A DNA stretch of 62,898 bases, the filler included, from Parasitella parasitica NRRL 2501 (taxonomy: Eukaryota > Fungi > Mucoromycota), in the NCBI GenBank assembly GCA_025201805.1. It is 4 parts of 4 records of this genome, joined end to end, with 100 filler letters (N's around TTAATTAATTAA, not from the genome) between each part and the next. Parts side by side here need not be neighbours in the genome. Positions count along the whole stretch, not along the records: positions 25,134 to 56,804 come from MU619265.1; 3 more parts are not named here. The stretch is one strand, 5' to 3'. Position 1 is the first letter of the stretch, and each line of letters opens with the position of its first letter. Below the pieces are notes generated by a model that did not search any database, was not told the DNA's origin, and saw only the letters and a program-made list of their open reading frames with translations. Of the stretch, positions 3,019 to 51,687 are shown piece after piece. A program made the translations under genes and the position numbers.

Positions 3019-3019
3019 T

Positions 3020-4609: not shown

Positions 4610-4651
<42 letters not shown>

Positions 4652-4921
4652 TAAAAATGCTCGATGGAATGTAATAATAGATTGCTGTCCAGTTCGAGAA
4701 TCTTGTACCAATGCTCTATCCAGTCCCCATTCGATAATCATGCCACGGTACACCTGAAAACAGAGGTAAGCGCCATACGCACAGAATTCAACCAACACGT
4801 ATAGAAATAAAAAGAAATAACGCTGATTATTTTCTCCAACACACTGGTTGATCCAAGCGCAATGATGGTCTGATCTACCCACACATGCTTTACACATGGA
4901 GCAATGTTTTGAGCGGGCAGG
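4134..4921 (-). CDS. DHHC palmitoyltransferase (SWF1-like); 5' part lost in the assembly gap 4977-5586
   Basis: [30 protein letters not shown] is the DHHC-CRD motif; TTNE motif; C-terminal [17 protein letters not shown]. Confidence 0.9.
4611..4648. repeat. (CA)n microsatellite in an intron
   Basis: About 19 CA units immediately after a splice donor on the minus strand. Confidence 0.95.
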
Positions 4922-6043
4922 TCTAGGAGTTCTATATCAATACGGCTGGATCCACACAGTATATATATATACATATNNNNNNNNNNNNNNNNNNNNNNNN
5001 NNNNNNNNNNNNNNNNNNNNNNNNNNNNNNNNNNNNNNNNNNNNNNNNNNNNNNNNNNNNNNNNNNNNNNNNNNNNNNNNNNNNNNNNNNNNNNNNNNNN
5101 NNNNNNNNNNNNNNNNNNNNNNNNNNNNNNNNNNNNNNNNNNNNNNNNNNNNNNNNNNNNNNNNNNNNNNNNNNNNNNNNNNNNNNNNNNNNNNNNNNNN
5201 NNNNNNNNNNNNNNNNNNNNNNNNNNNNNNNNNNNNNNNNNNNNNNNNNNNNNNNNNNNNNNNNNNNNNNNNNNNNNNNNNNNNNNNNNNNNNNNNNNNN
5301 NNNNNNNNNNNNNNNNNNNNNNNNNNNNNNNNNNNNNNNNNNNNNNNNNNNNNNNNNNNNNNNNNNNNNNNNNNNNNNNNNNNNNNNNNNNNNNNNNNNN
5401 NNNNNNNNNNNNNNNNNNNNNNNNNNNNNNNNNNNNNNNNNNNNNNNNNNNNNNNNNNNNNNNNNNNNNNNNNNNNNNNNNNNNNNNNNNNNNNNNNNNN
5501 NNNNNNNNNNNNNNNNNNNNNNNNNNNNNNNNNNNNNNNNNNNNNNNNNNNNNNNNNNNNNNNNNNNNNNNNNNNNNNNNNNNNNNAAAAAAAAAAAAAA
5601 AAAAAATCTCGGTCAAAAATGGCATTTATTTGGATCAAAACTACAGCCGACGTACCTCAATGAAGGCGATTCACCAAAAAGTAAGGTGAATACGACGAAT
5701 CCAAAAACTGTTAGGGATAGAACAAGGTAGGCCACTAGCTCCTAAATCTTGTATGTTAGTCTCCTCTTTACCAGAGCAAAATCCCGAGAATTATTAACCA
5801 TTCTGTATAGCCGAGGCAAGATTTGCAGTTGTTATATAATAATAATATATGAATATAAAAAAGGGACTCTTTGGAGCACGTTTTGCGTCAAGTTAATAAT
5901 TGCATGTGCCACCTTAATTTCCTTATGAGCTCAGAAGCAGTCAGTCTTTGTACAGTACATGCCTTTTGTTAATGCACAAGCAATGAGTTTGAACGATAGC
6001 AACGTGGAAACGTTTCACTTGATACATAGAGCAAAAGTCTCGT

Positions 6044-8221
6044 TTATTGTAAAGTAAAAAAATGACTAGCATCATGCATCATTGCAAACCACGGGTGAGG
6101 AAACTGATCATAATAACCTACATCAAATTTACCATTTCTTACTTTAAACCTATCGGCCGCTGTTGCAAAGAACGTTGAATCTAAATGTGGTAATTGATGG
6201 CCCTGAGTAGATATAATCACATCTAGCTCTTCCAAGCAAGATTTCATCATTAATCCAGCTTCTTTTGAAATTTGTTTGTTGCGTGATACGGCCAACAATA
6301 TAAGTACATCCAGAGCATGAAAAAAGTGTTTGCTAGCCGATAAAATATAGTTGCCTGCATACAATAACGTGAAAATCAATATCTTTTTACATGTCACTTG
6401 CTTAAAAAAAAAGGGGGTGGGGGGGCACTAAATAGACTTACAAGATTTCGTATCAGCTATAGCTAGTTGGTGGGTTGCATGTATCAGTAGCTGAGCGCTC
6501 TTCAATGATTCACTCAGCGAATGCTGCTGCACCAGGGACAACAGCTGATGTCCCTGATCAGATAATGCTTTCGGCTGCAAGAAGCTAGAATAGATGCTGA
6601 TATTGAGAAAATGATATTGTATGAAATTCACGAGTAGCACAGAATCCGTTGTTTGCTCAATGGCATCATTGCACTTTTTTGCGTCATTCAAGTCATCGCA
6701 AAGCCGTAGTTCTGCTGGTACAGCTGCCGTGTATTCTTTCATTACCTGCTCCATCCTTACGATTGACTCGAAGCTAAACGAGGACGCTTTACCCAATTGG
6801 ATGCGATGAATGTTTGCCTATTATGTATATTTATGCTGTTTAAGCAGCTATATTGTACAATCATGCGCGCTTACACCGTACCAGAAATTTTTTGACAAAG
6901 CTCTGGTTGTGCAGATTGATGATCCAATTCTGTGATTTAACGAATCTCTTTGTTTCGTCGGGTTCATCTGCCGTATACTTCCAAATAGGAAAATGAAACC
7001 CGCTTTTTTCCGTTGAATCGTTTGCAATATAGTCCAGTAATCGACTCATGAGGGCGGATGCTGTCATATGTCGAGTAAACAGCATTTTGTCAATGTCAGT
7101 GATTGGATCTTGGTGTATGCTAAGGGTATAATCGAGAGCAGCATCTTGTTGCTCGGCTGAGCCAGGGACTCGGTATTCAGGGTAATCATTTCTCAAGTCA
7201 ACCAAGATCTGATAAGCCATAGATACCAACTGACGACTTTCTGCAAATCGAAGTGTGATTTGCAGGTATTGCATCAATAAATTGACGGCCATTGCATTTT
7301 CTAATCTTTTCTCGGGCTGATCAAACTGGTCCAGAATGATATTCTTTGCTTTGGCGTAAAAATAGTCGCCCATGTTTCGTCGTTCTCGAGGTGAAAATAG
7401 CAAATGTTGACATGGAGTCGAGCAGACGTATGAACATATAGAAAGCGTAATGAGGTCTGTCAATGGGTCCTGGATGGGCTTCAATTGATCTCGGTAGGAA
7501 TTTTCGTGCACCAGTGGATTGTACACATTGTGGCATCGAAAGTAAATGTCTACCAACTGATCTACAAGTGATTTTGGGTCCAATAGTAGCAAAGAGGGTA
7601 TCAGTAAAGACATGGGCAGTCCATTGGTTTTATCCGTCAGATTCCCTGCCAAGACCTTGAGCGTGAAGGGAATCAGACTGCCAGAGCTTTCTTTTTCAAA
7701 GCTCAAGAGTATCTCGCCATTGCTGTCAGACGATCTGCAGCCGCCGTAATTTATCGGTGACAGATAAGTTACATTTAGATTGAATTGCATTAATTCACTG
7801 ATATTACGGATGCCTGTTTCTATTTGAAAGCTGCCGTTTTGAATTCTAAAACTCCAGTCATGAAACAGACTTTGAATCATCGTGTTTGCTATTTCAGGCA
7901 GGCTATTCTTCAAACGACACCTGTTCAATTGCTCTTGCATGTGGGAAATTGCTTCTTCTAGCTGCTTCACTTGGTTTTGCAACACATAAACGTCTTTATA
8001 CTGGTAAAGTTGATTTGGCTCTGCTTTCTCGTCTTGCCTGCTGGTCGCCTGCTGTTGGCATGGCTTACCAAACTTTTTGCATCGAACACACTCATGATTT
8101 GGGTTGGGACGCACGCATTTTCGGCGCTGCTTACGACATTCTATTGCATATGAATTTTCGAGATACAAAATGCAAACATGAGCAATGATTTACCTGTGCA
8201 AGGGGTATTTCGACCTTTCAT
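6044..8221 (-). CDS. Zn(II)2Cys6 fungal transcription factor with a middle homology region
   Basis: Spliced N-terminus MKGRNTPCT|ECRKQRRKCVRPNPNHECVRCKKFGKPC, followed by LVDIYFRCHNVYNPLVHE. Downstream exons 6428-6796 and 6044-6397. Confidence 0.88.
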
Positions 8222-8435: not shown

Positions 8436-11228
8436 TTAACACATCACTTCTAGTTGAGCAGGTCTAACCTGTAACGATGCTGGGTTTCTAACAAGAACAA
8501 TCGACTTTAAGGAGCGGTTTTGCCTACTTGTAGTATGAGCAAGGGTGTTGTAATGATACATTGTGTGGAACTTACGTTGCGTCGATGGCATTCATCTCTT
8601 TTAAACCTCCTACAGTGCATGCGCCAATGCCAAATCCATAGCCAAGAGATAATGAAAAATCACCGTTTGTAATGTAACCTATTTGCTCAGATTTGGGGGG
8701 TATTTCGCACGCGGCCTGTAATGATGAAAAGGTCAGAATAGCTCTATCTATGACACTATCAAATCTGTACATTTTGGTCTTTTCCCCTGATTTCCATGAG
8801 CTCTTTCAGCTTTCTCTTGCTTTTGATCAAAGGCGATTGATGCCGCATATGAAAAGTACACTTGTCATAATCTTGTTGATCTTTGAGAATATATACCATG
8901 GCATGTGCAGCAGGCTTTCCTCTATCTATGTATTTGATTCTTATTTTAACCAGTGTCTGATTTAGATCAAGGTCGTCTACTGCAATGCCAAGCTTTGACA
9001 GGAATGCATCCGACTTTGGTGAAGGTGCCAAGAAACCAGACACGAACCTGTCTCCGCAGATCAAAGAATACAAAGGTCGCACTGCCAAGTTGTGCTGTGG
9101 TTCCGTTTGCATATGGTCTGCCGTTGTTAAACTCTCAAAAGCAGATTCAAACGGATGCTCAATACCACGCTTTGCAAAGTTAACTCGTTTTGCAGGAGGT
9201 CGTTTACTCCAGATTTCCTGGGCGGCCTTTTTGGTTAATTGGCGTTGCACTTCAAATGCTCTTGTGCCGGGATAGTCCTGAGGAAAGCAAGGCATGCCGC
9301 TCTCAAAGTGCATGGCTCGAATATCATCGTATCCTGCAACTCGCGCGCCAGCAAAAACGAGTGATTTCCAGAACGCAAGGCCGAATCCACGGGGGATAAT
9401 TATAGACCACCCTTCAATCAGCTCGTGCGACGATAGCGGCTTCTGGGTAACATCAGGCCTATTAAAGCTTGGCCCGCCACGTTGAATGAGAAGAATAGGG
9501 ATCTGAGCGTCTTGCGCTGTCGGCTTCAACTGACTGCCTGGAATAAGGTTTTCTTCTCGACGCAAATTCAAGCCGTACTCAGGGACCTTGTTGTCAAAAA
9601 TCGATTTACGTATGTCCTTGTCCCATAGGGTTGTATTTGCTGCATCTGATGGCCATTGAGTCAAGGTACTTTGAATTTTTCGCTGATCTTCCGCAGAAAT
9701 GACACTGCTGCGAGGGGGAACTTTTTGGGGAAATCTACACAGATGTGAGATACATTAGACTCAAGTTACACACGTACACTTTTACCTCAAACGAGGATCT
9801 TGGACAAGTAGGCCAAGAACACTGCCGGGAGACAAGGAACAAGATGAACGGAGTTGGCCAAGGTCTTTCCAAACAGCGTTTCCACGAATAGTCTCATCCG
9901 GCACAGGGTCAAGAATGGCTTGCAGAAGAGCAGTTGATCGAGGGCCAGTCAATTCAAATCTCAAAACGTCATTGCGTAGATCATTCAATTCCACATGTGT
10001 CGCTTCTGTTTCCTTTATGGCGAGTTTGATAAACACCAATGCTTCGTTAATGGCAGAAGGATGGATCCACAGCCAAATGGTGTCCCTTGTCATTGGTTTC
10101 CATAGAAATGAGATGGGACAAATCAGCTTGGTGGGATATCCCAAGTATTCGTACAGACAAGTCGTCCCAACGCGGTTTCCCTTGATGAATCTAGCCATAG
10201 AAAAAAAAAAGGTCTGAGTGCCGTGCGCTGATTTCGTCATACACACGGCGGATACTTACCTCTCGCTGCCAACTGATGGAGATCCCTTATCCGTGAGCGA
10301 ATCCAGGATGTTGATGATCCCGGCCTGATCGCCTTTTAATTCTATGCATGCCATGTAAGATGCATCGTGAACAATCGAAAGGCGTGTGAATGATCGATAT
10401 GTGATGCGCACTGATTTTGTATTTGGACGAGACGCAATTCTATAACCCCAAATGTCCTTCATTTTCATTCGTTTAGCATGCCAAATGTGTGTTTCTAGCC
10501 ATTTTTTCGATTCTATTTGCAAATTGTTTTTAGCTGGCGATAATCTTTACATGCAGCGAGTGTGTTTTTACTTTGACGTCGAAGGAATTCTTGCACAGTA
10601 ATTCTAGGTGTTTTGATCTTTTTCACTTTCTTGCGGACAAGCGGACTGTTGGGAGCAGAACTGTAGGCCTAGTTTTTGGGCAGAATGTCAGTGAGGAATT
10701 CAATATCTGACTTTATGGCTGCAATGTTCCATACTTCTCTGGCTGCTTTTTCCCTCAATCTAGCAGGGAGTCTGTTTATATTATGGCTTGCTGCACGACG
10801 ACGAAGCCCGCGAGGTAATGATTGAAATGCGAGTTCGGTCAAGGCATAACTAGTGATACCTGGGTCAGATGTCAAGCTAATGAAAGGGCGGTTCTCATTA
10901 CTTGCCTTGCTTTTTTGATCGCCTGTTGCATATCGTTGATCTCCATAATCCGAGCAAGAGCGTATCGATCTGCCTCAATGGGCCCGCTTACTTTTGGTAT
11001 CTCATCAGCTGGATGAACAAAGTGTCAACGTCATGCACTCGCAATATTCTTTTGAAATCCATTACCAAGTGTGTTGTCTGTCTTGTTGTGTGTACCGATA
11101 TGACGGGCCGACTTGTTTCTCTCTAGGTTCGATCAGCCCCATCAACATGTATCTCTCACATTAACTTTTTGCTTGGACATACCTCGTCGTTTCTGCTTTC
11201 CAGACGGGCTATCTTTTCCCAATGACAT
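8436..11228 (-). CDS. POP1: RNase P/MRP subunit POP1
   Basis: FQSLPRGLRRRAASHN, WLETHIWHAKRMKM, GWSIIIPRG...FPQDYP, KRPPAKRVNF and IGYITNGDFSLSLG motifs across multiple exons. Confidence 0.95.
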
Positions 11229-39403: not shown

Positions 39404-40553
39404 TTACAATTGGTGGGATACGCCCAGGCACCTTCCGCAGCCAGGACAAAAGTGAGCTACATCTATATATAAATCGTTATATGAAACTGCCAATGTATTA
39501 CTTGATGTTGAGTTTGTATAGTAACCTTTGAAATATTTCACGTAAAATGGAACCCAAAACAACACCACGGTGCACAGCAATCTAAGAAACACTTGAAGCG
39601 TTAGTGTGCGTACTACGCCAACAGCCGCTTTTTGCTTACAGGATGAACGACACGAGCCAAACCATCGGTCCATTTCGATATCGAAGTCGTGTATGGATGT
39701 ACTTTTCGCACCCTTCGCAAAACGCTTGTGTCTCAAAATCAGGCAACTCTTGTTGCTTCAAGATATTGAGTCTTTTTTGACTCCAAGATCGTACCGTCTG
39801 GCGCCCTGTGCTAATTGCACTCTGGATACTGGCGCCGCTCATGCTTTGCCGTTGGTTGCCATTTGCTTGCAGGAACATGTCTTTTTTCCTGTGCAAGAAA
39901 GGTGCAGTTGCAGACGGCAAAGGCTGAGGAGTAGTTGTAGCAGTCGTTGTAGGCGTTTGCCAGGGTGGCGTGTTAGATTCAGCACCATAGTAGCCTGCAG
40001 ACGCGTGGTACTGATATGGTTGTTGTTTTTGTAGTGGAAGCGGGGTGCCAAAGTGAAATGTTTGGTTCTGTGTAGAGTTTTGCGATGATCTTCGACTCAA
40101 GTACTCTGCTTGCTGTTGCTGTGCCGCCGTAATTGAAAGAGCCGAGCACAACGACCGATTATCGTCTGTTCTTTGCTGTTGATTTTTATTTCTGGCGCTA
40201 TTTTCCAACGATGAAGAAGATGTGGATGTAGACGAGCGAATTGAACAACTGGAAAATAAGATCGGTGTGGATCGGGCCTCTGCAAAGCGTCGATGAGCGT
40301 CAGCTGATAGATCAGGATCTATTTCGGCTGGTTCAGTTGTTGGGTCCTGCTGTTGCTGCTGGTGCTGCTGTTGCTGCTCGACACCACCGCCAGTCTCCTG
40401 TGCCTCTGATGTCTCGTCCGGTTGTTTGGCCGTGGATGACATTTTGTGCTGATTCGATGTGGTCTTTTGCGCTTTCTTTTTTAATGTTGCTAGTTTCGTC
40501 TTCTTGACAAATTGAACAAAGGTTGCGACAGTTGATGAAGGAAAGCGATTCAT
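39404..40553 (-). CDS. LITAF-like zinc-ribbon membrane protein with a long disordered N-terminus
   Basis: QAFCEGC...hydrophobic stretch...FWVPF...KDVAHFCPGCGRCLG assembled over 3 exons. The start could alternatively be 40442. Confidence 0.85.
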
Positions 40554-41042
40554 TTTAATCCGATATTTTAGAAAAGGGAGGGTTGATTAGTGTGTAGCAG
40601 AAAGAAATAAAGATGAATGTTGAAGAAAGGTTAAAAACAGAAAAAAGGAGAAAAAGGCTCTTTTTTGTTTCCTCATAACAACAACAACAATGATTTGATC
40701 AGTAACAATAAACAATAAGATGCACTCGGGTTAACTTTCACAGGTTAAAGCAAAAAGAATAATAGTGCTACATACCCAAAATGCTTTTGCAAATCAAGAG
40801 ATCTGTGGTTCAGTGTGACTAAAGAGGCAGGCCCAAGTAAGCCCCTCCCTGCTGACAACTCCACATATCCACACTACATCACAAGACAGTCTAAAGAACA
40901 CATCATAGCAGGCTCTAAATGGGTTTGCTGCCATTGTTGTCTTGCGTTGTTTTGAATAAGCGCCAAAAACAGATTCTTGACAATACAGTGAATTGCGTTT
41001 GAAAATAGAATTTTTGGGAAATAAAAATAGAGAAAATTTTTC

Positions 41043-41105
41043 TTAAGCAATAGAAATTTTTATTAAGCAGTAGAAATTTTTATTAAGCAATAGATATTTT
41101 TTTTT
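41043..41105 (+). repeat. Subterminal 20-bp tandem repeats (mirror copy at 50503-50565)
   Basis: ttaagca(a/g)tagaaattttta repeated 3 times; possible transposase-binding sites (inference). Confidence 0.75.
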
Positions 41106-41335
41106 TAACAATAGAGTTTCTTGAGATCAATAGAAAAAAATTACTAGAAAAAAAAACCAACAGTAGAATTACTGTAAACCAGTGGGTTAATACAGAAATA
41201 AATATCTCAAGAGTTAGAATCGCATACATTTCCTGAGAGCTTTTCCAAATCTGGCTGTGGTGTTTTCTTAATGATATAAATACTCTGCACATTCTTATAC
41301 TTTTTATAAAATTAACCTATTTATTATTACTTGCA

Positions 41336-42652
41336 ATGTACACCACAACCAGATTCTACCATTATCTACCCTCTGGCGAATTCGTTTGTGATGAAGAACC
41401 TGAATACCAGCCAAAACAAGATGGAGCGGCTATTAAGTCGTTGTACCAGATGGAAGGTATTCCAGAGAATGAGTCTTCGTCCGAGGATGAAGATGATAGT
41501 CATTTTAATACAGCAGTGGCTATGGAAGAAATTGGTTTAGAGGCAACGCCTCTACCTAATATGATTTGGACACCAACTAAGTATAAACCAAAAGATGTTG
41601 CTCAATTTATTTCTCTGTTGCAAAACAAAAATTTAAAGGTTTCTAAAGCTGCAAAGGAAGCTGGCATTGGATTAAAAGCTGCTTATAAGTTCAAAGATCA
41701 ATGGAAAAAAAATGGTGGAACAATCTTACCTGGTTACAAACCAGCCTCTGAAGTTAAACGTAAAGGAAATAACGTGAAATTGACAGAGGAACATTCACAA
41801 TATTTACATGCATTTATTGAAAAGCATCCAACTTGTATTGTGAAAGATGCTACAGAATCCCTTTGTGAGACTTTTCAAGGCTTAACAATTAACGAGTCCA
41901 CTGTATATCGTCACATTACTGAAAAGCTTGAGTTTACTTTGACTCGTACACAAGCAAGGTTTGTAAACAGAAATTCTGATGATACGCTTGAACAACGTAG
42001 ACAATTTATTGAAGATATCGATGCAATGAATGAAGAAAACTTTTACAAAAAAAGATGCATTTTCGTGGATGAAAGTGGGTTCAAGAAAAACATGGTACGT
42101 CCTGTGGCGTGGTCTAAAAAAGGTGAGCCTGTAGAAGTGGATGTAGAAGCAGAAGGAACTAATCTGAGTATCCTGGGTTGTATGTCAGCCTATGGCTTGA
42201 TTGCTCTTTCGCAACAAGTTCCAAAATCAAGCAGAAAGAAACAAAAAACTCCTCTTGGTACAAAAAGAGCCTTGCCTCATGGAACTAATTCGTCACACTT
42301 TGTGTTGTTTGTAGAAGAGATCATTTCTGTTTTGAACAAGATTGGATTAAAGGATATGTACATAGTGATGGACAACGCCTCCATTCACAAAACACCAGAA
42401 GTCCTAAAAGCAATAAGGGATAGTGGACATTATGCTTTATTTTTACTCCCCTATTCGCCAATGCTGAATCCTATTGAAGAATGCTGGGCAAAAATCAAGT
42501 TAGTAGTTCGCAAAACTCCACTTGGAAAGAACGAAATGATTGCTGATAGAATTGAAGAAGCAGCAAAAACAGTTACAGCAAAAAACTGTAGAGGTTGGAT
42601 TCGACATTCCCAAAGACAATTTCCAAAATGTCGCAACATGGAAAGGTTATAA
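41336..42652 (+). CDS. Tc1/mariner DD34E transposase, left-arm copy (438 aa)
   Basis: FVDES, VMDNA and LLPYSPMLNPIE (D34E); HTH VSKAAKEAGIGLKAAYKF. Confidence 0.96.
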   Translation: MYTTTRFYHYLPSGEFVCDEEPEYQPKQDGAAIKSLYQMEGIPENESSSEDEDDSHFNTAVAMEEIGLEATPLPNMIWTPTKYKPKDVAQFISLLQNKNLKVSKAAKEAGIGLKAAYKFKDQWKKNGGTILPGYKPASEVKRKGNNVKLTEEHSQYLHAFIEKHPTCIVKDATESLCETFQGLTINESTVYRHITEKLEFTLTRTQARFVNRNSDDTLEQRRQFIEDIDAMNEENFYKKRCIFVDESGFKKNMVRPVAWSKKGEPVEVDVEAEGTNLSILGCMSAYGLIALSQQVPKSSRKKQKTPLGTKRALPHGTNSSHFVLFVEEIISVLNKIGLKDMYIVMDNASIHKTPEVLKAIRDSGHYALFLLPYSPMLNPIEECWAKIKLVVRKTPLGKNEMIADRIEEAAKTVTAKNCRGWIRHSQRQFPKCRNMERL

Positions 42653-43364
42653 ATGTTGTATTTGGGGGTGGTCTACATTTATATAAATAATAAATGTACA
42701 CTATTAAAAGAATAAATTCAAATATTAGTATAAAATAATACAAAGAAACATAAAAGTTTCATATAACGAATTGTCTAGTATGAAATCCAATTCTATAAAC
42801 GTTGTTGCACAAGTTAAAACCGATAAATAGTAGACAATAACAAGCATAAAGCTAATTGTAACTATTTAATCCAATATAAATAAATGATACATAAAGGATG
42901 ATTATTTGATAAGAATAATTCTTACACAAGATTAGCTACCTTGTTGTAAGATTTGAACAGGTTATGATTAGAGAATAACATCACTTTATGACATTTACAC
43001 ATAAAAATATATTACTTTGACATATGGTCAAGTAATAGGTTTAATGTATGAATATGTTTTAGGATACATTATTCCAACACCAAGATTGCAATAAAGAAAC
43101 AATACTTGTAGATAAAGTTTAATCTCAGATTCAATGGCTGGATTTAACTTTATAAAACACAACTGTTCACTTTAACTTGCACATGCAGCAACAATGAATA
43201 ATATCCCAAAGGGGAACATTAATCAATATGGAATCACAAATACAAACTCCATACTATCAAGCCTAATTTCGAAATCATATAAATAGGAAAGATTTATTTT
43301 ATTCAAAAAGTTCTTTAGTCTATTTTTACTTAATAAAATCTTTTAAGTTTGATCTCGTTAATTT

Positions 43365-43931
43365 TTATCTTTTAATATTTAACTCAAGAATCGATAAATA
43401 CCACACCTCCATCAAGCTATCGACTGCATCTTGTCTTGTTGCCTGTGGACGTTCATCGAAAAACTGCACGAGATGCCTCTTATGCTCTTCTTTTAGTTGT
43501 GATGGGGCTCGATTTATTTTATTTGTCTGTTTCTCGTAAATGTCCCAGGCCGGGTCTTCTCTAAGTTTTTTGCCCATAACTGAGCAGTGCGAATATTTAT
43601 ACCTGCTTTTCGTGCAGAAGGAGCTGCTTTCAAAAGCTTGATTTTATGAAAGTAATAAAATACTGCTTTTTGCTTGTCCGAATAATTGTTGTAAGTCCCC
43701 TTTGCTACATCTTTCATGTGTACTTCTTCTACCAAATCCTCCATCTCTTGGTCGAAATTATTTGCAGTTTCCTCAAGCTGGAAAGCATGTTCGTTCACTG
43801 ACCGATACCTGCTCATATTGGTGAGTGACAATATTATATGGATCAATATAGTCTTGAAGATCCATCGCTTCGATTCCTTGCTCATTCGTGATGTTTCCAT
43901 GACCATCCTCAAAGAAAAAAGGGATATCCAT
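43365..43931 (-). pseudogene. Truncated, frameshifted N-terminus of a second Tc1 transposase family (left arm)
   Basis: MDIPFFFEDGHG...YSDKQKAVF...AGINIRTAQLW/KKLREDPAWDIY...QATRQDAVDSL aligns by eye with the N-terminus of the 12995-14320 transposase. Two frameshifts; no DDE domain. Confidence 0.85.
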
Positions 43932-44283
43932 AATGATTGTTTTCAGAGAAAAAAGATTATCGAAAAGGAAATACGTACTTTAAGATCGCAACAAGAGCAA
44001 TTTGAGCTAAACAAAAGCGTAATTTGGGCATGACAGAAACGAAAATGCGTCAGTTGACGAAGACGAGGACGAAACTGCGGTAACAAACTCCAAGAGCCGC
44101 GCTTCATTTTCTTTTTTAAAATATCTCTAACTCCAAAAGGCAGTTTTTTAAATTGTGTTGAATCAAAAGTCCCTCACTCTCACTCCAATTGTGACGAGAG
44201 TTATTAGTTAACTAAGTTCAGTTTGACTAGAGAGGTGCGCTGCATAGGCACGTCTAAAGTTGATTGCGGAATGCTGTGCAACG

Positions 44284-44836
44284 TTTATTACCTGGTCATT
44301 TTTTACGTGGTCATTTACGTGGTCATTTTTTATCTGGTCATATTTTACGTGGTCATTTACCTGGTCGTTTTTTATCTGGTCATTTTTNNNNNNNNNNNNN
44401 NNNNNNNNNNNNNNNNNNNNNNNNNNNNNNNNNNNNNNNNNNNNNNNNNNNNNNNNNNNNNNNNNNNNNNNNNNNNNNNNNNNNNNNNNNNNNNNNNNNN
44501 NNNNNNNNNNNNNNNNNNNNNNNNNNNNNNNNNNNNNNNNNNNNNNNNNNNNNNNNNNNNNNNNNNNNNNNNNNNNNNNNNNNNNNNNNNNNNNNNNNNN
44601 NNNNNNNNNNNNNNNNNNNNNNNNNNNNNNNNNNNNNNNNNNNNNNNNNNNNNNNNNNNNNNNNNNNNNNNNNNNNNNNNNNNNNNNNNNNNNNNNNNNN
44701 NNNNNNNNNNNNNNNNNNNNNNNNNNNNNNNNNNNNNNNNNNNNNNNNNNNNNNNNNNNNNNNNNNNNNNNNNNNNNNNNNNNNNNNNNNNNNNNNNNNN
44801 NNNNNNNNNNNNNNNNNNNNNNTTTTTACGTGGTCA
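44284..44836 (+). repeat. Tandem array of 12/15-bp units T(3-6)A(C/T)(G/C)TGGTCA, interior unresolved (N gap 44388-44822)
   Basis: Seven units before the gap and one after; ends about 85 bp upstream of the ATG at 44923. Confidence 0.85.
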
Positions 44837-44922
44837 TTATCGTTGCCCTTTCTTTTCACTTTTGCTTCTTTTCTCTTTTGCACTCTATTTCCTCTTCTAT
44901 TTCTATTTTTTTCCCCTTTGCT

Positions 44923-46216
44923 ATGTCGACCATTACAAGAGAACGAGCACTTTGTATGTTTTTTTACAAACCATACAATGAAGAAAATGTAATCAGTCTA
45001 GCCAAGATACTTGAGAAGGAAAACTTAGAAATATGCTACACAGACGAACCTAATGAACCCGTATTATTACATTCCTTATCAATAATCCACAATCCTTTTC
45101 GTTACCGAACTTATATCTGTAAAAGGACACTAGAACCAACAACAGCTAATGAAAAAACGTGCGCTTGTAAGCTTTTTTTTTAAAAAAAAAAAGAACTTTT
45201 TCTTATAGTTTTATTTGTTTAGTAAACTCTGCCCAAATCGTACTACTGCTAAACACAGTATATTTACCTTATGATCCTGAAAATAGCGACCTATATGAAA
45301 ACAAAATTGTGACTATGAAACAAATTTACTGCACAGCATTAAATTATTCTGATGACTTGGATACCAAAAACTTGAATTCCTTTATAAAATGGTGCTCATA
45401 TAAAAAGCTTGACTTTTTGCAAGTGGGAACAAAAAGAAAGATTGATGAAGTTGACGACAAAAAAACGACAAGGACAAGATCTCTATATGTGTTAAAAGAT
45501 GACTATCTTGGTAAGGACCCTTCAAAATACCTAAATAAGTGGCCACTAAGATATAGCTTTGTAGATGACGTTGCTTATAAGATTAACGACTATCTTCCAT
45601 CATACCAAAATTATATAAAGAAACTTAAGGAGGAGGACCATACAATTATAGGATATATTAGAAAGTCGCCTGGAAAAGAGCCTGATGATAGAAGACGCCA
45701 ACTTTTAGAAGCTATGAGCTTAAATCTCAAAGAAAGATCGTTGGTAGATGTGGTTTTTGCTTCTCCTTGTTCTCAAGCTTCTGATCCAATGGAAAGTAGA
45801 GATAAAAAACAACATGCATTATTGGATCAGATTGGTGTTGCGGGAAGCACTCAAGGTGAAGCCTATCATGTATTTACATATTTAATAAAATATTAATCCT
45901 TACTTCTTGTAGACTTAATGAAATTTATAGCTTCAAAAAACAAAGTTTGTTTGGTCACTTTGGATTATGCCGGCCTCAGCACAAACTGTTTAGACTTGAA
46001 GGAATTCTTAAGGTAAAATAAAAAACAATAAAAAAAGAAAAAGGTAGCTTCTAATAATATTCTAATAGTAAAAAGACTCAAATCAAAAAAATTATAGTTG
46101 ATCTCTTTCCTTATACAAACGAAATGACTGTGTATGATTGTAACCAGCTATTAGAAGATCCTGGACGTTTAAAGGTTTTCAATTGTAGAAAAGCTTTTTA
46201 CCGAAGATCCAAGTAG
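44923..46216 (+). CDS. Four-exon, 374-aa protein with a C-terminal serine-recombinase (resolvase/invertase)-like domain
   Basis: Exons 44923-45166, 45223-45855, 45913-46012 and 46069-46216. GT..AG introns of 56, 57 and 56 nt keep the frame open. Motifs IIGYIRKS (cf. resolvase GYxRVS) and VCLVTLDYAGLSTN. Confidence 0.72.
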
Positions 46217-46526
46217 TTTGCATGCAGTTAAATACTATAGTCAATAGTACTTCTATACAATGTGATAATATCCCATAGTTCTTGATTCCTCCTTCAGACT
46301 AATACCTACTTTAACTATTGTTTTCCACACTATTCTGTTTCATCCAGTCCTACCTCTCAATTATGTGTAAATTATAAACTAAAAAATAAACAGATTCATA
46401 AGTTAATACAGTTTTACAAAAAGACCCTGCTAGGAATATATGAATTTATTTCATTTTTCAAAAAGTAACCTCGCTTTAATGTTTTCCATTTTCTTTTCAG
46501 TGAGTACAGCTGCGAAATTCTCCGTA

Positions 46527-46775
46527 TTAAGAAACAAAATTGCTACTGTATAGATTGCTTGATTTGTTATTCAATTGGGCAGGATAAAGATGGTATTTCA
46601 AAGACTTAGACTTTATTGTAGCAAGCATACATAATACGGGTTCATTAGGTTCGTCTGTGTAGCATATTTCTAAGTTTTCCTTCTCAAGTATCTTGGCTAG
46701 ACTGATTACATTTTCTTCATTGTATGGTTTGTAAAAAAACATACAAAGTGCTCGTTCTCTTGTAATGGTCGACAT
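46527..46775 (-). CDS. 82-aa ORF sharing its first 48 codons with the recombinase-like gene, then diverging
   Basis: MSTITRERALCMFF...EPNEPVL then CMLATIKSKSLKYHLYPAQL...*. Expression unknown. Confidence 0.4.
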   Translation of the reverse strand: MSTITRERALCMFFYKPYNEENVISLAKILEKENLEICYTDEPNEPVLCMLATIKSKSLKYHLYPAQLNNKSSNLYSSNFVS

Positions 46776-46861
46776 AGCAAAGGGGAAAAAAATAGAAATA
46801 GAAGAGGAAATAGAGTGCAAAAGAGAAAAGAAGCAAAAGTGAAAAGAAAGGGCAACGATAA

Positions 46862-47324
46862 TGACCACGTAAAAANNNNNNNNNNNNNNNNNNNNNNNNN
46901 NNNNNNNNNNNNNNNNNNNNNNNNNNNNNNNNNNNNNNNNNNNNNNNNNNNNNNNNNNNNNNNNNNNNNNNNNNNNNNNNNNNNNNNNNNNNNNNNNNNN
47001 NNNNNNNNNNNNNNNNNNNNNNNNNNNNNNNNNNNNNNNNNNNNNNNNNNNNNNNNNNNNNNNNNNNNNNNNNNNNNNNNNNNNNNNNNNNNNNNNNNNN
47101 NNNNNNNNNNNNNNNNNNNNNNNNNNNNNNNNNNNNNNNNNNNNNNNNNNNNNNNNNNNNNNNNNNNNNNNNNNNNNNNNNNNNNNNNNNNNNNNNNNNN
47201 NNNNNNNNNNNNNNNNNNNNAAAAATGACCAGATAAAAAACGACCAGGTAAATGACCACGTAAAATATGACCAGATAAAAAATGACCACGTAAATGACCA
47301 CGTAAAAAATGACCAGGTAATAAA
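46862..47324 (-). repeat. Mirror copy of the 12/15-bp tandem array (N gap 46876-47220)
   Basis: Reverse complement of 44284-44836. Confidence 0.85.
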
Positions 47325-47676
47325 CGTTGCACAGCATTCCGCAATCAACTTTAGACGTGCCTATGCAGCGCACCTCTCTAGTCAAACTGAACTTAGTTAA
47401 CTAATAACTCTCGTCACAATTGGAGTGAGAGTGAGGGACTTTTGATTCAACACAATTTAAAAAACTGCCTTTTGGAGTTAGAGATATTTTAAAAAAGAAA
47501 ATGAAGCGCGGCTCTTGGAGTTTGTTACCGCAGTTTCGTCCTCGTCTTCGTCAACTGACGCATTTTCGTTTCTGTCATGCCCAAATTACGCTTTTGTTTA
47601 GCTCAAATTGCTCTTGTTGCGATCTTAAAGTACGTATTTCCTTTTCGATAATCTTTTTTCTCTGAAAACAATCATT

Positions 47677-48243
47677 ATGGATATCCCTTTTTTCTTTGAG
47701 GATGGTCATGGAAACATCACGAATGAGCAAGGAATCGAAGCGATGGATCTTCAAGACTATATTGATCCATATAATATTGTCACTCACCAATATGAGCAGG
47801 TATCGGTCAGTGAACGAACATGCTTTCCAGCTTGAGGAAACTGCAAATAATTTCGACCAAGAGATGGAGGATTTGGTAGAAGAAGTACACATGAAAGATG
47901 TAGCAAAGGGGACTTACAACAATTATTCGGACAAGCAAAAAGCAGTATTTTATTACTTTCATAAAATCAAGCTTTTGAAAGCAGCTCCTTCTGCACGAAA
48001 AGCAGGTATAAATATTCGCACTGCTCAGTTATGGGCAAAAAACTTAGAGAAGACCCGGCCTGGGACATTTACGAGAAACAGACAAATAAAATAAATCGAG
48101 CCCCATCACAACTAAAAGAAGAGCATAAGAGGCATCTCGTGCAGTTTTTCGATGAACGTCCACAGGCAACAAGACAAGATGCAGTCGATAGCTTGATGGA
48201 GGTGTGGTATTTATCGATTCTTGAGTTAAATATTAAAAGATAA
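47677..48243 (+). pseudogene. Truncated Tc1 transposase N-terminus (right-arm mirror copy)
   Basis: Same sequence as 43365-43931, including both frameshifts. Confidence 0.85.
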
Positions 48244-48955
48244 AAATTAACGAGATCAAACTTAAAAGATTTTATTAAGTAAAAATAGACTAAAGAACTT
48301 TTTGAATAAAATAAATCTTTCCTATTTATATGATTTCGAAATTAGGCTTGATAGTATGGAGTTTGTATTTGTGATTCCATATTGATTAATGTTCCCCTTT
48401 GGGATATTATTCATTGTTGCTGCATGTGCAAGTTAAAGTGAACAGTTGTGTTTTATAAAGTTAAATCCAGCCATTGAATCTGAGATTAAACTTTATCTAC
48501 AAGTATTGTTTCTTTATTGCAATCTTGGTGTTGGAATAATGTATCCTAAAACATATTCATACATTAAACCTATTACTTGACCATATGTCAAAGTAATATA
48601 TTTTTATGTGTAAATGTCATAAAGTGATGTTATTCTCTAATCATAACCTGTTCAAATCTTACAACAAGGTAGCTAATCTTGTGTAAGAATTATTCTTATC
48701 AAATAATCATCCTTTATGTATCATTTATTTATATTGGATTAAATAGTTACAATTAGCTTTATGCTTGTTATTGTCTACTATTTATCGGTTTTAACTTGTG
48801 CAACAACGTTTATAGAATTGGATTTCATACTAGACAATTCGTTATATGAAACTTTTATGTTTCTTTGTATTATTTTATACTAATATTTGAATTTATTCTT
48901 TTAATAGTGTACATTTATTATTTATATAAATGTAGACCACCCCCAAATACAACAT

Positions 48956-50272
48956 TTATAACCTTTCCATGTTGCGACATTTTGGAAATTGTCTTTGGGA
49001 ATGTCGAATCCAACCTCTACAGTTTTTTGCTGTAACTGTTTTTGCTGCTTCTTCAATTCTATCAGCAATCATTTCGTTCTTTCCAAGTGGAGTTTTGCGA
49101 ACTACTAACTTGATTTTTGCCCAGCATTCTTCAATAGGATTCAGCATTGGCGAATAGGGGAGTAAAAATAAAGCATAATGTCCACTATCCCTTATTGCTT
49201 TTAGGACTTCTGGTGTTTTGTGAATGGAGGCGTTGTCCATCACTATGTACATATCCTTTAATCCAATCTTGTTCAAAACAGAAATGATCTCTTCTACAAA
49301 CAACACAAAGTGTGACGAATTAGTTCCATGAGGCAAGGCTCTTTTTGTACCAAGAGGAGTTTTTTGTTTCTTTCTGCTTGATTTTGGAACTTGTTGCGAA
49401 AGAGCAATCAAGCCATAGGCTGACATACAACCCAGGATACTCAGATTAGTTCCTTCTGCTTCTACATCCACTTCTACAGGCTCACCTTTTTTAGACCACG
49501 CCACAGGACGTACCATGTTTTTCTTGAACCCACTTTCATCCACGAAAATGCATCTTTTTTTGTAAAAGTTTTCTTCATTCATTGCATCGATATCTTCAAT
49601 AAATTGTCTACGTTGTTCAAGCGTATCATCAGAATTTCTGTTTACAAACCTTGCTTGTGTACGAGTCAAAGTAAACTCAAGCTTTTCAGTAATGTGACGA
49701 TATACAGTGGACTCGTTAATTGTTAAGCCTTGAAAAGTCTCACAAAGGGATTCTGTAGCATCTTTCACAATACAAGTTGGATGCTTTTCAATAAATGCAT
49801 GTAAATATTGTGAATGTTCCTCTGTCAATTTCACGTTATTTCCTTTACGTTTAACTTCAGAGGCTGGTTTGTAACCAGGTAAGATTGTTCCACCATTTTT
49901 TTTCCATTGATCTTTGAACTTATAAGCAGCTTTTAATCCAATGCCAGCTTCCTTTGCAGCTTTAGAAACCTTTAAATTTTTGTTTTGCAACAGAGAAATA
50001 AATTGAGCAACATCTTTTGGTTTATACTTAGTTGGTGTCCAAATCATATTAGGTAGAGGCGTTGCCTCTAAACCAATTTCTTCCATAGCCACTGCTGTAT
50101 TAAAATGACTATCATCTTCATCCTCGGACGAAGACTCATTCTCTGGAATACCTTCCATCTGGTACAACGACTTAATAGCCGCTCCATCTTGTTTTGGCTG
50201 GTATTCAGGTTCTTCATCACAAACGAATTCGCCAGAGGGTAGATAATGGTAGAATCTGGTTGTGGTGTACAT
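48956..50272 (-). CDS. Tc1/mariner DD34E transposase, right-arm copy (438 aa)
   Basis: Protein identical to that of 41336-42652. Confidence 0.96.
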   Translation of the reverse strand: MYTTTRFYHYLPSGEFVCDEEPEYQPKQDGAAIKSLYQMEGIPENESSSEDEDDSHFNTAVAMEEIGLEATPLPNMIWTPTKYKPKDVAQFISLLQNKNLKVSKAAKEAGIGLKAAYKFKDQWKKNGGTILPGYKPASEVKRKGNNVKLTEEHSQYLHAFIEKHPTCIVKDATESLCETFQGLTINESTVYRHITEKLEFTLTRTQARFVNRNSDDTLEQRRQFIEDIDAMNEENFYKKRCIFVDESGFKKNMVRPVAWSKKGEPVEVDVEAEGTNLSILGCMSAYGLIALSQQVPKSSRKKQKTPLGTKRALPHGTNSSHFVLFVEEIISVLNKIGLKDMYIVMDNASIHKTPEVLKAIRDSGHYALFLLPYSPMLNPIEECWAKIKLVVRKTPLGKNEMIADRIEEAAKTVTAKNCRGWIRHSQRQFPKCRNMERL

Positions 50273-51687
50273 TGCAAGTAATAATAAATAGGTTAATTTT
50301 ATAAAAAGTATAAGAATGTGCAGAGTATTTATATCATTAAGAAAACACCACAGCCAGATTTGGAAAAGCTCTCAGGAAATGTATGCGATTCTAACTCTTG
50401 AGATATTTATTTCTGTATTAACCCACTGGTTTACAGTAATTCTACTGTTGGTTTTTTTTTCTAGTAATTTTTTTCTATTGATCTCAAGAAACTCTATTGT
50501 TAAAAAAAAAATATCTATTGCTTAATAAAAATTTCTACTGCTTAATAAAAATTTCTATTGCTTAAGAAAAATTTTCTCTATTTTTATTTCCCAAAAATTC
50601 TATTTTCAAACGCAATTCACTGTAAATGAATTATACGTTTGTTGTTGATGTGTACATCTATAGCACCGTTGTTTTTTCAGATGATTAAGTATGTACGATA
50701 AATGGCAGTATGCTACTAGTAAAACCATTAAACCAAAAACTGATTACTGCTATATGTGCCTAGCCAAATCATGGAAGGCAAGTATATCTGATACTGATCG
50801 CATGACATTTCCACATTTTGTTGCTTATGTTTTTGATACATGCGATACTAACGTTGATGAGGGCATGAGCTATACCACATATATATGAAAATTGGTACAT
50901 ACTAAATATGTATGCATTTGCAAAATAAAGCCCATGCATTACTGCCATCGCTTTTGAACGCGTGATATTTAAAATAATTAGAATGACTGCAACCCAATTC
51001 TGTAAAATGCTTTGTAGATGCACTTTCTAGCATTAAACCAAGATAAGGAACGCACATGTGTTTATGTATACTCGATGCACTTTAACACAGTGCTTTTCTT
51101 TGGTTTCTATTCCGGAATAAAACGATTTACAGCTTTTCGTTTTCTGGTGTTCATTGCTTTTCTTTAACAATATCTATCTTGCTGAAGAATAAAACATTAA
51201 CAGTATATTACTGTAATGGCATTGTAACAAGAGATATTGTATTTTCAAATGGGTTTATTACACTTCAGCATACTTTATTAATCTACTTGTTTAAACTTGA
51301 AGCCCTTCTTTTCTGCATCTTTGAAAGCTCTTTGTTTGTGGATCAGTAACACTTGGAAGCAAAATACCTTGCTATTATGTGTTATATCTTAGACTAATGC
51401 AGGTCCTTTTATCTCTATATAAACAGTCGCAAGGCTACAGTGCATGTCGATTGGTAGCGCTTTAATAGGTGCATCAAGTTTTGTTCCAACTATGTCGAAT
51501 AGGATATTATATTGCTGTTTGCTCTGGATAATAATTGAGCTTGACAGTCGAATTTGCCAAATTGTTTCGTTTTAAAATTCTGACAGCTTATCCACTTCTC
51601 CCCAAAACACCATGGGTTAGGTATCTGGGTACCAATACCTTGAAGAGAGAAAGGGAGAAAAAAAAACACGCTCTCTTTCAGTTAAAT

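Follow-up and report, generated by a model that had tools for sequence, protein, structure and literature searches.

A 9.6-kb palindromic Tc1-type composite in Parasitella parasitica with a serine-recombinase-fold gene at its centre

Results

Structure of the palindrome

The stretch of DNA analysed here (the window; 62,898 nucleotides, filler included) comes from Parasitella parasitica NRRL 2501, and its part taken from MU619265.1 holds a 9.6-kb palindrome at 40984-50624, the arms of which (40984-45067 and 46631-50624) are inverted copies with 100% identity (Table 1). With the N runs excluded, the matching letters amount to 3404 nt (40984-44387 versus 47221-50624) and 245 nt (44823-45067 versus 46631-46875), both 100% complementary. 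Sequence inspection shows CAGTG termini with TA outside them on both sides, as ...gacaa TA CAGTGAATTGCG at the left and CGCAATTCACTG TA aatga at the right. The 23-nt terminus occurs twice in the window against 0 occurrences expected by chance, and a word-7 BLAST of the window with the first 352 nt of the arm as the query detected no inner copy of this Tc1 end. The mirror-image arms, TA flanks and CAGTG ends that an earlier note had read from this DNA were confirmed, as were the 20-bp subterminal repeats, the 12/15-bp array and the 48 codons of the central gene that it placed in each arm.

Table 1 Features of the palindrome and its flanks (positions of the window)
Feature	Position	Strand	Basis or remark
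Left flanking TA	40984..40985	.	Directly outside CAGTG; the inverted repeat stops here
Left end of Tc1-A with CAGTG terminus, 5' leader and, at 41034-41115, four 20-bp subterminal repeats	40986..41335	+	Sequence
Tc1-A transposase, open 438-aa ORF, DD34E	41336..42652	+	Pfam DDE_3 (PF13358), E 2e-21
Spacer foreign to canonical Tc1-A	42654..43513	.	42654-43015 resembles a repeat on C178
Family-B Tc1-like transposase, N-terminal (HTH) fragment, 132-aa ORF, reads outward	43514..43912	-	tblastn with the 477-aa L028 transposase
34-nt family-B subterminal motif	44013..44046	.	94% match to L032 8420-8453
Recombinase unit, left inverted repeat with 86 conserved nt, 12/15-bp array (from 44284, gap 44388-44822), promoter, codons 1-48	44205..45067	+	R. 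stolonifer match
Serine-recombinase-fold gene, 356 aa	44923..46216	+	Exons 44923-45166, 45223-45510, 45565-45855, 45913-46012, 46069-46216
Unique core, 1563 bp: codons 49-356, 3' UTR, tail	45068..46630	+	Single copy in the genome
Right-arm promoter and exon 1 copy, antisense into the core, 82-aa ORF (48 recombinase residues and 34 others)	46527..46775	-	ORF scan
Right arm, mirror of 40986-45067	46631..50622	-	Transposase 48956-50272, family-B fragment 47696-48094, gap 46876-47220
Right flanking TA	50623..50624	.	Sequence inspection

In the DNA run X3, the k-mer depth of the arms was 83.8 (41549-44317) and 75.9 (44823-45067) against 39.6 for the flank contig and 42.7 for the core contig, i.e., approximately twofold. 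X3 may be the read set behind the assembly, and k-mer depth is independent of the scaffolder. The flank contig of this run enters the arm by 29 nt and stops at 41012, and the core contig (45038-46660) carries 30 nt of the arm at either side; all junctions fall within contigs. Because the arms have twice the depth of flank and core, the palindrome is real and two-armed and not a scaffolding artefact.

Both assembly gaps (44388-44822 and 46876-47220) lie within the non-coding tandem array, with array units on either side; no true reading frame crosses them, and the X-filled ORFs found there are artefacts. No contig spanning the array gap was present among the contigs of the runs examined. Since array k-mers are about fivefold over-represented (depth 440), each gap is probably a collapsed array. 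The true length of the array is hidden by the gaps in both arms. The gap-free homologue from Rhizopus stolonifer (L032, 8898-9451) has the flank, a 166-nt array of 12-nt units and the promoter in the same order as Parasitella, and from it we infer that the arms continue over the gaps.

The 9.6-kb composite is single-copy in the P. parasitica genome. At the corresponding loci of Mucor circinelloides and M. velutinosus, where PP2C-UGDH-LITAF is kept, nothing matched the right flank of the window, and synteny with Mucor ends at the element; a 26-nt empty-site word had no match in a metagenome scan, and a second insertion was likewise not found. The two empty-site results are neutral as to insertion as a unit. 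Run X24, considered as a possible strain without the element, was rejected as uninformative on its presence: its differences are nearly all C>T or G>A, which suggests a library of the bisulfite type.

The outer part of the arms

The left end of the Tc1 element that bounds the palindrome (Tc1-A) shares 98% identity with that of an element of Thamnidium elegans (L080 5582-5629), and the two ends of a MITE found on C13 match it as well. The transposase is intact, as had been claimed, with the catalytic residues D245, D346 and E381, the 34-residue spacing of which makes it DD34E; an exact database look-up of the 438-aa protein returned no record. Tc1-A DNA is 97% identical to L080 5669-7320 of T. 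elegans, with the homology ending at 42654, the transposase stop codon, and the window diverges from organism C and from T. elegans at exactly this base in both comparisons. A canonical two-ended Tc1-A of 4.35 kb with both TIRs is present in T. elegans (L080 5582-9933). The Tc1-A region is transcribed, giving sense and antisense spliced contigs in the RNA run X7.

No right Tc1 end follows either transposase, so one transposase between two short TIRs is not the layout here; arm identity extends 2.4 kb past the transposase. In the spacer behind it, the stretch 42654-43015 is 75-84% identical to L028 5760-5431. The next ORF had been described as an HTH-only pseudogene; the HTH ORF stands, and its identity was revised to an N-terminal fragment of a second Tc1-like family (family B), a full transposase copy of which (477 aa) lies in L028. 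A homologous exon was found within the 807-bp TIRs of an element on C49, and the fragment is transcribed (X7 contig 43373-44332). The counterpart of the 34-nt motif in L032 stands 117-150 nt from a TA/CAGTGCC terminus, and by the orientation of the motif the family-B end faces the recombinase unit; at ~44160-44204, no family-B terminus was recognisable and the subterminal motif was found alone. Judged by these sequence comparisons, each arm has as its outer 3.2 kb a 3'-truncated DD34E Tc1 together with a piece of another Tc1 family.

The inner recombinase unit

The core and the inner ~0.86 kb of each arm (~44205-47403) are, on comparative sequence grounds, an independent multi-copy mobile unit that occurs across Mucorales and belongs to a family specific to this order. 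The unit was found without the Tc1-A transposase in R. stolonifer, Pilaira, Mucor mucedo, Hesseltinella and at least 10 other Parasitella loci. Exon 1 is present twice, facing inward, at at least 10 Parasitella loci and also in Hesseltinella and on L055, and a short tandem array is always part of the inverted repeats of the unit, as are the promoter and the first ~50-65 codons. All full copies examined have long inverted arms; among the copies, these arms, which contain internal tandem arrays, vary from 0.2 to 4.1 kb in length with 94-100% identity. The R. stolonifer unit is gap-free, has ~1-kb arms and shares with Parasitella an identical inner repeat boundary; both of its arms (8898-9376 and 11408-10942 of L032) are 90-94% identical to the left inverted repeat of the window. 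The outer arm DNA of R. stolonifer differs and consists of a family-B transposase 3' fragment and a TA/CAGTGCC end. At 44205, the unit boundary has no recognisable terminus of its own, either in the window or in L032.

Other copies combine the unit with other Tc1 sequences, and the partner family varies from copy to copy. The unit on C14 ends in TA/CAGCGG and has transposase C-terminal fragments in its arms; that on C15 ends in TA/CAGTCG, a terminus common to transposase-bearing elements (C102, C166) and MITEs. Four independent subfamilies of the recombinase (window, L032, C14 and C15) are associated with Tc1-type ends or pieces of a transposase, and the recombinase gene adjoins DDE_3 genes on C71 and C56. 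The joint occurrence of DDE-Tc1 sequences and the recombinase family recurs with other Tc1 families; linkage of the Tc1-A transposase to the recombinase gene was not found at the other loci examined. The single undescribed element family that the earlier note proposed was not upheld, as the inner unit is multi-copy without this transposase and the Tc1 part is canonical and two-ended in T. elegans. Inverted, equal-scoring DDE_3 pairs, compared at the level of protein hits, occur on C46, C128, C25, C66 and C30 without a recombinase match; because inverted identical Tc1 transposase hits recur in this way, the recombinase is probably not needed for the formation of such palindromes.

Between Parasitella, Pilaira, R. 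stolonifer and M. mucedo, the unit is 94.7-98% identical, introns included, whereas host genes among these species are ~70% identical; this difference points to a recent horizontal spread of the unit.

The central gene and its protein

Each of the five exon translations of the central gene is an exact substring of the P. parasitica protein KAI8643775.1 (P0153); the spliced protein was taken from this database record, and the scripts were run exon by exon. The gene is expressed and spliced: the X7 RNA contig joins exons at GT..AG across two introns and breaks off on either side of the others, and the mRNA ends near 46395. The arm carries exactly 48 codons of the gene with its upstream region. 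RNA depth in X7 was 1036 at 44852-45067 and 313 at 46501-46700, the latter past the mRNA end. Between species copies, pN/pS of 0.19-0.43 indicates purifying selection.

In the predicted model of the protein (pLDDT 89.6), a small N-terminal domain is followed by a winged helix (residues 83-172; RFX DBD, a weak match with Z 6.0; the MerR type was not seen) and a C-terminal catalytic fold. For residues 203-350, serine recombinases made up all of the top 23 VIA matches, with Z 7.3-10.3 over 94-138 aligned residues at rmsd 2.2-4.2, and the next, unrelated match had Z 5.9; Foldseek gave a probability of 1.00 for the serine-recombinase fold, and the nearest named shapes in the Atlas were PF00239. In the model, these residues thus adopt the fold of a serine-recombinase catalytic domain. 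Model residue 203/204 aligns with chain residue 1 of Sin and gamma-delta resolvase, which puts S212 at the position of the nucleophile, with TIIGYIRKS in register with M-I-I-G-Y-A-R-V-S and the Y-x-R-x-S motif present. G207, Y208 and R210 do not vary among 26 sequences, in which K211 and S212 show at least 90% conservation.

The D-R-x-x-R site (R68 and R71 of gamma-delta resolvase) reads LD[YFH][AS]G[LIF] in this family, without the arginines, in a register judged by eye within the structural alignment. Because this motif is absent, catalysis by the modelled protein is uncertain. The serine-recombinase assignment made earlier accordingly stands at the level of the fold (VIA, Foldseek) and fails at that of the Pfam profile and of the DRxxR arginines: Pfam Resolvase (PF00239) gave no match at E <= 1 with the exon or with six full-length homologues, nor any across the genome, and a PDB profile search with the protein had none. 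An hhalign comparison with E. coli PinE aligned 14 columns with a probability of 2%, and a homodimer prediction for residues 174-356 scored 0.01, which counts neither for nor against the assignment. The protein family comprises 384 clusters at 50% identity, has no Pfam domain and is unannotated.

Discussion

The composition of the locus is best read, in our opinion and with somewhat better than even confidence, as a nested element, in which a Tc1 derivative and the Mucorales unit were joined and the arms were extended outward from the inner unit. The outer 3.2 kb would have been host-foreign DNA on one side of the unit, that is, a Tc1 missing everything after its stop codon and a 5' piece from another Tc1 family. 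Reverse copying of this flank onto the other side may then have extended the inverted repeat of the unit, through repair synthesis primed within the repeat, fold-back or template switching after a transposase-made break. Copying up to the Tc1 terminus would yield two identical Tc1 left ends, each by a TA, and two intact transposase genes. This outward-copying mechanism we infer from the anatomy of the element only. The whole 9.6 kb has what a Tc1 transposase requires for cut and paste, its movement being putative; TA stands on both sides and may be a target-site duplication. Transposition of the composite as a unit is unproven, and an origin in place and an arrival by transposition are indistinguishable here.

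One alternative would be a collapsed repeat contig placed twice by the scaffolder, for which the perfect identity of the arms, the gaps at the same place in both of them and the draft state of the assembly (450 contigs) might speak. The doubled k-mer depth of the arms, the core contig that reaches the arm at both ends, the flank contig that enters it and the identical inner junctions in gap-free R. stolonifer and organism C largely refute such a single-arm collapse and leave it very improbable. A composite of the Tn10 style, with two independent Tc1-A insertions flanking cargo, would also place two inverted transposase genes around other DNA; however, the inner end is missing from both copies, both are truncated at the same base and the same 2.4 kb stands behind both at 100% identity, so that this reading is refuted by the sequence and hardly to be credited. 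The view of the earlier note that one end was duplicated, rather than two Tc1 copies brought together, agrees with this.

Two further readings give the recombinase-like protein a larger part. If this were one autonomous element type that required both enzymes, the DDE transposase would move it between TA sites and the recombinase would create, invert or homogenise the arms; the TA flanks, the two identical left ends with intact transposase ORFs, the transcription of both genes and the repeated association of the recombinase family with Tc1 ends, pieces or DDE_3 genes all fit. We nevertheless consider it unlikely, as there is one copy, the Tc1-A transposase is unlinked to the gene at the other loci examined, the Tc1 partner varies, equal DDE_3 pairs exist without a recombinase and the canonical arginines are absent from the protein. 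The role in resolving, inverting or homogenising the arms that had been ascribed to the recombinase is likewise a conjecture about function, and palindromes seem to form without the gene as well. Serine recombinases cut at a central dinucleotide, which ends on both sides of the element. The recombinase-like protein might, then, be the true transposase of the inner unit, with TA as its crossover site and the Tc1 pieces reflecting an insertion preference; its gene is conserved, expressed and under purifying selection, and its domain order resembles that of IS607 TnpA. This we regard as improbable: the ends on C14 and C15 are typical Tc1 termini common to DDE-encoding elements and MITEs, the boundary at 44205 lacks a terminus of its own in both the window and L032, and serine-recombinase transposons excise by directly oriented ends without TIRs (IS607-like; PMC3627910).

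Under the nested-element reading, we suggest with low confidence that the recombinase-like gene serves Tc1-type elements as an accessory or is carried by them as cargo, and does not act as the transposase. With equally low confidence, the modelled protein could bind the array repeats of both arms through its winged helix, synapse or recombine them and invert the core. The boldest form of the argument would be an undescribed class of TA-inserting, long-TIR elements that combine a very divergent eukaryotic serine recombinase with Tc1-type DDE transposases, in which the recombinase binds the arrays, drives the synapsis, inversion or copying that makes and keeps the arms, and the elements pass between genera, plausibly via the fusion parasite Parasitella; we think this rather doubtful. 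As a mycoparasite, Parasitella is known to transfer nuclei into the hosts it infects (PMC4807231).

Serine recombinases in eukaryotic mobile DNA are known so far only from IS607-like elements without TIRs (PMC3627910). An unannotated Mucorales protein family with the predicted serine-recombinase fold and serine motif, encoded by expressed genes inside Tc1-bounded long-TIR elements, would accordingly represent a rare enzyme type and, if active, possibly a new small eukaryotic site-specific recombinase tool. The palindrome and the other Tc1 derivatives with one end duplicated in this genome also offer a tractable case for the origin of kilobase-long perfect TIRs and the uptake of cargo.

Comparison with known systems

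The Tc1-MP1 group (PMC9977792) comprises Tc1/mariner DD34E elements described from Mucoraceae and Rhizopodaceae. The outer arm resembles the DD34E elements in its TA flanks, CAGTG termini, 20-bp subterminal repeats and DDE_3 domain, with 97% DNA identity to the T. elegans element (L080) up to the stop codon. Canonical elements, however, have two TIRs of ~80-170 bp and one transposase, whereas here two copies of the left 4.08 kb form a perfect inverted repeat and everything after the stop codon is replaced, with no right end. A Tn10-style composite would consist of two complete insertion elements with both ends, in contrast to the absence of inner ends here.

Tn3-family transposons likewise unite a DDE transposase and a serine-recombinase-fold protein in one TIR-bounded element; here, the transposase is of the Tc1 type, the putative binding arrays are inverted rather than a single res site, no replicative cointegrate is indicated and the host is a eukaryote. 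In IS607 TnpA, the DNA-binding domain is N-terminal to the catalytic domain, as in the central protein (6dgc, Z 9.7, rmsd 2.2), and the IS607-like elements of eukaryotes and giant viruses share the eukaryotic mobile setting of the gene. Those elements have no TIRs and no TSDs (PMC3627910), unlike the long TIRs and TA flanks of the palindrome and the TA/CAG ends on C14 and C15; the central gene further differs from IS607 in its introns and in lacking a Pfam Resolvase match and the DRxxR arginines, and no TnpB/Fanzor partner was seen beside it.

The small serine invertases (Hin, Gin and Pin) resemble the present gene in its position beside or between inverted sites and in the GYxRxS motif; however, the domain order is reversed here, and inversion would leave the gene as it is, since an identical promoter and exon 1 come from either arm. 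Foldback-type transposons (Drosophila FB, Galileo) have kilobase-scale, near-perfect inverted arms with tandem sub-repeats, the length of which varies between copies. The kilobase-scale inverted arms with internal arrays described here (0.2-4.1 kb between copies) are alike in this respect; the superfamily and termini are different, and the arms also include the promoter and exon 1 of the central gene, to which this copy adds a whole transposase gene.

Structure and authenticity of the palindrome

The arms of the 9.6-kb element proved 100% complementary over all letters read, and its ends are TA/CAGTG...CACTG/TA, so that the mirror-image arms, CAGTG ends and TA flanks described in an earlier note were borne out, together with its list of the arm contents. 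The terminal 23-mer was found at the two outer ends only, and sensitive BLAST with the first 352 nt detected no inner copy of the Tc1 end, in agreement with the earlier statement that an inner TIR is absent. Both assembly gaps lie inside the non-coding 12/15-bp array, where they are crossed by no gene and bridged by no contig of the sequencing runs; we infer the continuity of the arms through them from the gap-free Rhizopus stolonifer homologue, which keeps an identical order on either side of a 166-nt array.

The possibility of an assembly artefact was addressed through the depth of Logan contigs from DNA run X3. The assembly, of 32.8 Mb in 450 contigs, was possibly built from this run, but depth is independent of scaffolding. 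The ends of the contigs coincide exactly with the breaks that a perfect inverted repeat imposes on a de Bruijn graph. At a depth of 39.6, the flank contig stops 29 nt inside the arm, the core contig 45038-46660 (depth 42.7) enters the arm by 30 nt at either end, and the arm contigs have depths of 83.8 and 75.9. Since flanks and core are thus single-copy and the arm two-copy, the sole graph path leads from one flank through the arm, the core and the inverted arm to the other flank, with the core orientation not fixed by it. The depth and junction check proposed earlier therefore confirmed a genuine palindrome, with junction-spanning contigs at the core ends and the flank. Independent support for the junctions is provided by organism C (run X8), in which a single 508-nt contig spans the right junction (46630 to inverted 45067), and by R. 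stolonifer, in which both inner junctions are present in a 4.8-Mb contig.

Host genes flank the element, namely PP2C, UDP-glucose dehydrogenase and LITAF on the left and a UIM protein on the right. The PP2C-UGDH-LITAF order is retained in Mucor circinelloides and M. velutinosus, and synteny with both species stops at the element (40553-40984 compared with Mucor loci L078 and L079); on the right side of the window, none of the genes that come next in Mucor (aldo-keto reductase, DnaJ/ZUO1, ITFG1) is present. The earlier proposal to look for further TA-flanked copies and an empty site yielded neither for the composite: it is present once in the genome searched, and no empty site was found in the Mucor loci compared or in a metagenome scan.

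Coordinates of the features (window positions unless a contig or locus is named)
Feature	Position	Strand	Remark
LITAF-like ORF	39639-40553	-	100% identical to P. parasitica LITAF-like protein
Complementary arm segments, outer	40984-44387 with 47221-50624		100%
Complementary arm segments, inner	44823-45067 with 46631-46875		100%
Recombinase-like gene exons	44923-45166, 45223-45510, 45565-45855, 45913-46012, 46069-46216		exact translation to 356-aa P0153
82-aa peptide ORF	46527-46775	-	right promoter copy
Sense introns, transposase ORF	41760-41824, 42121-42186		65 nt (frame-shifting), 66 nt
Antisense introns (CT..AC)	41661-41729, 41850-41919		transposase region
T. elegans cargo gene	L080 7522-9057	-	C2H2 zinc fingers
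C178 ORF	L028 5860-7311	-	483 aa
Inverted DDE_3 pairs	C46:167897-176145, C46:211998-216036, C128:47419-51534, C25:91988-96438, C66:63818-70229, C30:246049-250116, C38:61848-67336		identical scores and ORF lengths

Composition of the outer arm

The outer-arm element, Tc1-A, has a transposase of the Mucoraceae DD34E group (PMC9977792). From its terminus as far as 42654, it matches an element of Thamnidium elegans (L080 5582-9933) at 97% identity; past this point the T. elegans element differs, carrying a cargo gene (C2H2 and PD-(D/E)xK-like), a 21-bp minisatellite and, on the right, a regular TIR. As organism C departs from the window at 42654 too, the Tc1-A copies of the window are truncated right after the stop codon. 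Further inward, the HTH part of a second Tc1-like transposase, family B, runs from 43912 down to 43514, and a family-B subterminal motif (44013-44046) is oriented as if the family-B 5' end faced the recombinase unit.

In the T. elegans cargo gene, which is 33% identical to an ORF on Parasitella contig C178, a PD...GFGEAK motif suggests a PD-(D/E)xK nuclease; the minisatellite (about 30 units) adjoins the right TIR. Contig C13 carries a miniature form of Tc1-A, some 240 bp long (G000:C13:268869-269105; L025 about 2870-3106), its right end being 100% identical to the first 44 nt of the window element and its subterminal repeats 97%. In RNA contigs of run X7, short introns have been removed from within the open transposase ORF, both sense and antisense; the transposase region (41661-42186 and its mirror copy) is therefore transcribed from both strands. 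Nearly all differences between the window (over 41902-46143) and contigs of X24, a run labelled as this species, are C>T (67) or G>A (44), as in a bisulfite-type library.

The central gene and its product

The product of the central gene is P. parasitica KAI8643775.1; exons were compared one by one, with P0153 as the reference for the spliced product. An X7 RNA contig has GT..AG joints at 45509/45564 and 45853/45911, RNA pieces end at either side of the remaining two introns, and the mRNA ends near 46395. RNA depth was 1036 over the arm promoter and exon 1 (44852-45067) versus about 307 for the remaining mRNA, and coverage runs beyond the mRNA end (46396-46700). Transcription probably starts from both copies of the promoter; that from the right copy would converge with the gene and yield an N-terminal peptide. 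Between species copies, pN/pS was 0.19-0.43, from small counts.

The AlphaFold model of the protein, built from 26 homologues, had a pLDDT of 89.6. Residues 203-350 match the serine-recombinase catalytic domain: the best 23 VIA rows are all such enzymes (including TP901-1 integrase, Sin, gamma-delta and Tn3 resolvases, IS607-like TnpA and large serine integrases) at Z 7.3-10.3, the next unrelated row being at Z 5.9, the Foldseek probability for this fold was 1.00, and the nearest named Atlas shapes were PF00239. The alignments start by pairing chain residue 1 with model residue 203/204, so that the invariant G207-Y208-x-R210-K-S212 coincides with the nucleophile motif G-Y-A-R-V-S. Ahead of this domain lies a winged helix (residues 83-172; RFX DNA-binding domain, Z 6.0; the following approximately 20 rows are mostly winged helices). 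The relation to serine recombinases was seen by no sequence profile (PDB profile search, PF00239 over the genome, hhalign versus PinE), Pfam gave no family match, and the D-R-x-x-R position reads LD[YF]AGL in this family; the missing profile match and this reading count against full serine-recombinase membership.

The inner unit as a mobile family

The exon 2 query returned 384 clusters (E <= 0.001, 50% library). The Atlas clusters of the protein are confined to Mucoromycota, and the named relatives are all Mucorales (Parasitella, Pilaira, three Mucor species, two Rhizopus species, Hesseltinella, Halteromyces and Backusella). In the Parasitella genome, tblastn gave 65 matches, and at least 10 loci (C15, C56, C14, C22, C326, C37, C170, C178, C29 and C209, the last counted through its DNA repeats) carry the first exon twice, facing inward, as do locus L055 and Hesseltinella, where two copies at separate loci are 99.6% identical. 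A tandem array lies just outside the promoter in every copy examined, its unit varying by subfamily.

The R. stolonifer core, 94.7% identical, lies between arms (L032 8378-9376 and 10942-11928) that are 99-100% identical to one another and have the same inner boundary as the arms in the window, at codon 48. Homology with the window starts at 44205, and farther outward the R. stolonifer arms consist of other DNA, with the 3' fragment of a family-B transposase and a TA/CAGTGCC terminus. Outward-reading transposase C-terminal fragments are likewise present in the C14 arms. The C14 and C15 units end in TA/CAGCGG and TA/CAGTCG, respectively, and the C15 terminus reappears on transposase-bearing elements (C102, C166) and tiny MITEs; given these termini and fragments, such units resemble non-autonomous derivatives of Tc1 that bear cargo. 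The partner Tc1 family changes between subfamilies, and the inner unit constitutes a separate mobile family. The earlier reading of a single DDE-plus-recombinase element is consequently supported in part: for the palindrome as observed, and not for the single family, since the inner unit is nested, independent and variably partnered.

On contig C71 (G000:C71:83659-85154), the best genome-wide DDE_3 match (112 bits) lies no more than about 160 nt downstream of recombinase-family exons (residues 83-356), on the same strand. In Mucor mucedo (L033 9647-10752), a Tc1 transposase HTH region (residues about 83-202) immediately precedes the recombinase-like C-terminal half (177-356) on the same strand; this truncated or chimeric copy is annotated as a 195-aa protein.

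Discussion

The element is a long-TIR Tc1 derivative with a divergent serine-recombinase-fold cargo family. Its nesting, truncation, perfect two-copy arms, TA flanks and expression are observed; for the origin of the palindrome, we propose that the inverted repeat of the inner unit was lengthened outward, the left-hand neighbourhood having been copied to the right side as far as the Tc1 terminus. Fold-back or template-switch repair after transposase cleavage would account for the copy stopping exactly there. The earlier note had considered that the recombinase may resolve, invert or homogenise the arms. One duplicated end is not confined to this locus: the C49 element has 807-bp perfect TIRs with the first transposase exon, two right ends are seen in the C14 and R. 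stolonifer units, and at least six further inverted DDE_3 pairs of equal score, 4-8 kb apart, were found in a protein-level scan on contigs without a recombinase match, which argues that palindromes stem from Tc1 elements or host repair rather than from the recombinase. In this genome, Tc1-like elements may commonly have their transposase duplicated in mirror image. The recombinase-like protein might bind the array and promote synapsis or inversion of the arms. Although present only once, the 9.6-kb structure is potentially mobile, as both of its left ends are good and both transposase genes intact.

The C49 element (L030, G000:C49:185000-194999, 1897-7806) is a 5.9-kb family-B Tc1-like element ending in TA/CAGTGCC, with 100% identical TIRs holding the first (HTH) part of the transposase, inward-reading on both sides.

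Recombinase units of Pilaira anomala (L031), R. stolonifer and M. mucedo are 98%, 94.7% and 94.5% identical to that of the window, with only 1.5-5.4% differences in introns and 3' UTR. Host genes next to the units in those species have 67-81% identity to their Parasitella counterparts, and synteny between the loci is lacking. Judged from these comparisons, the unit has probably been transferred horizontally among Mucorales in recent times, with a fusion mycoparasite among the partners; Tc1-A, too, is 97% identical to its T. elegans copy. Parasitella is a fusion parasite and a laboratory nucleus donor to Absidia glauca (PMC4807231).

A full-text literature search found no description of this recombinase family or of Tc1 elements with serine recombinases; the known eukaryotic serine-recombinase elements are IS607-like, without TIRs and TSDs (PMC3627910). 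The P. parasitica protein shares with IS607 TnpA its domain order, in which the catalytic domain comes after the DNA-binding one, and differs in this order from the resolvases.
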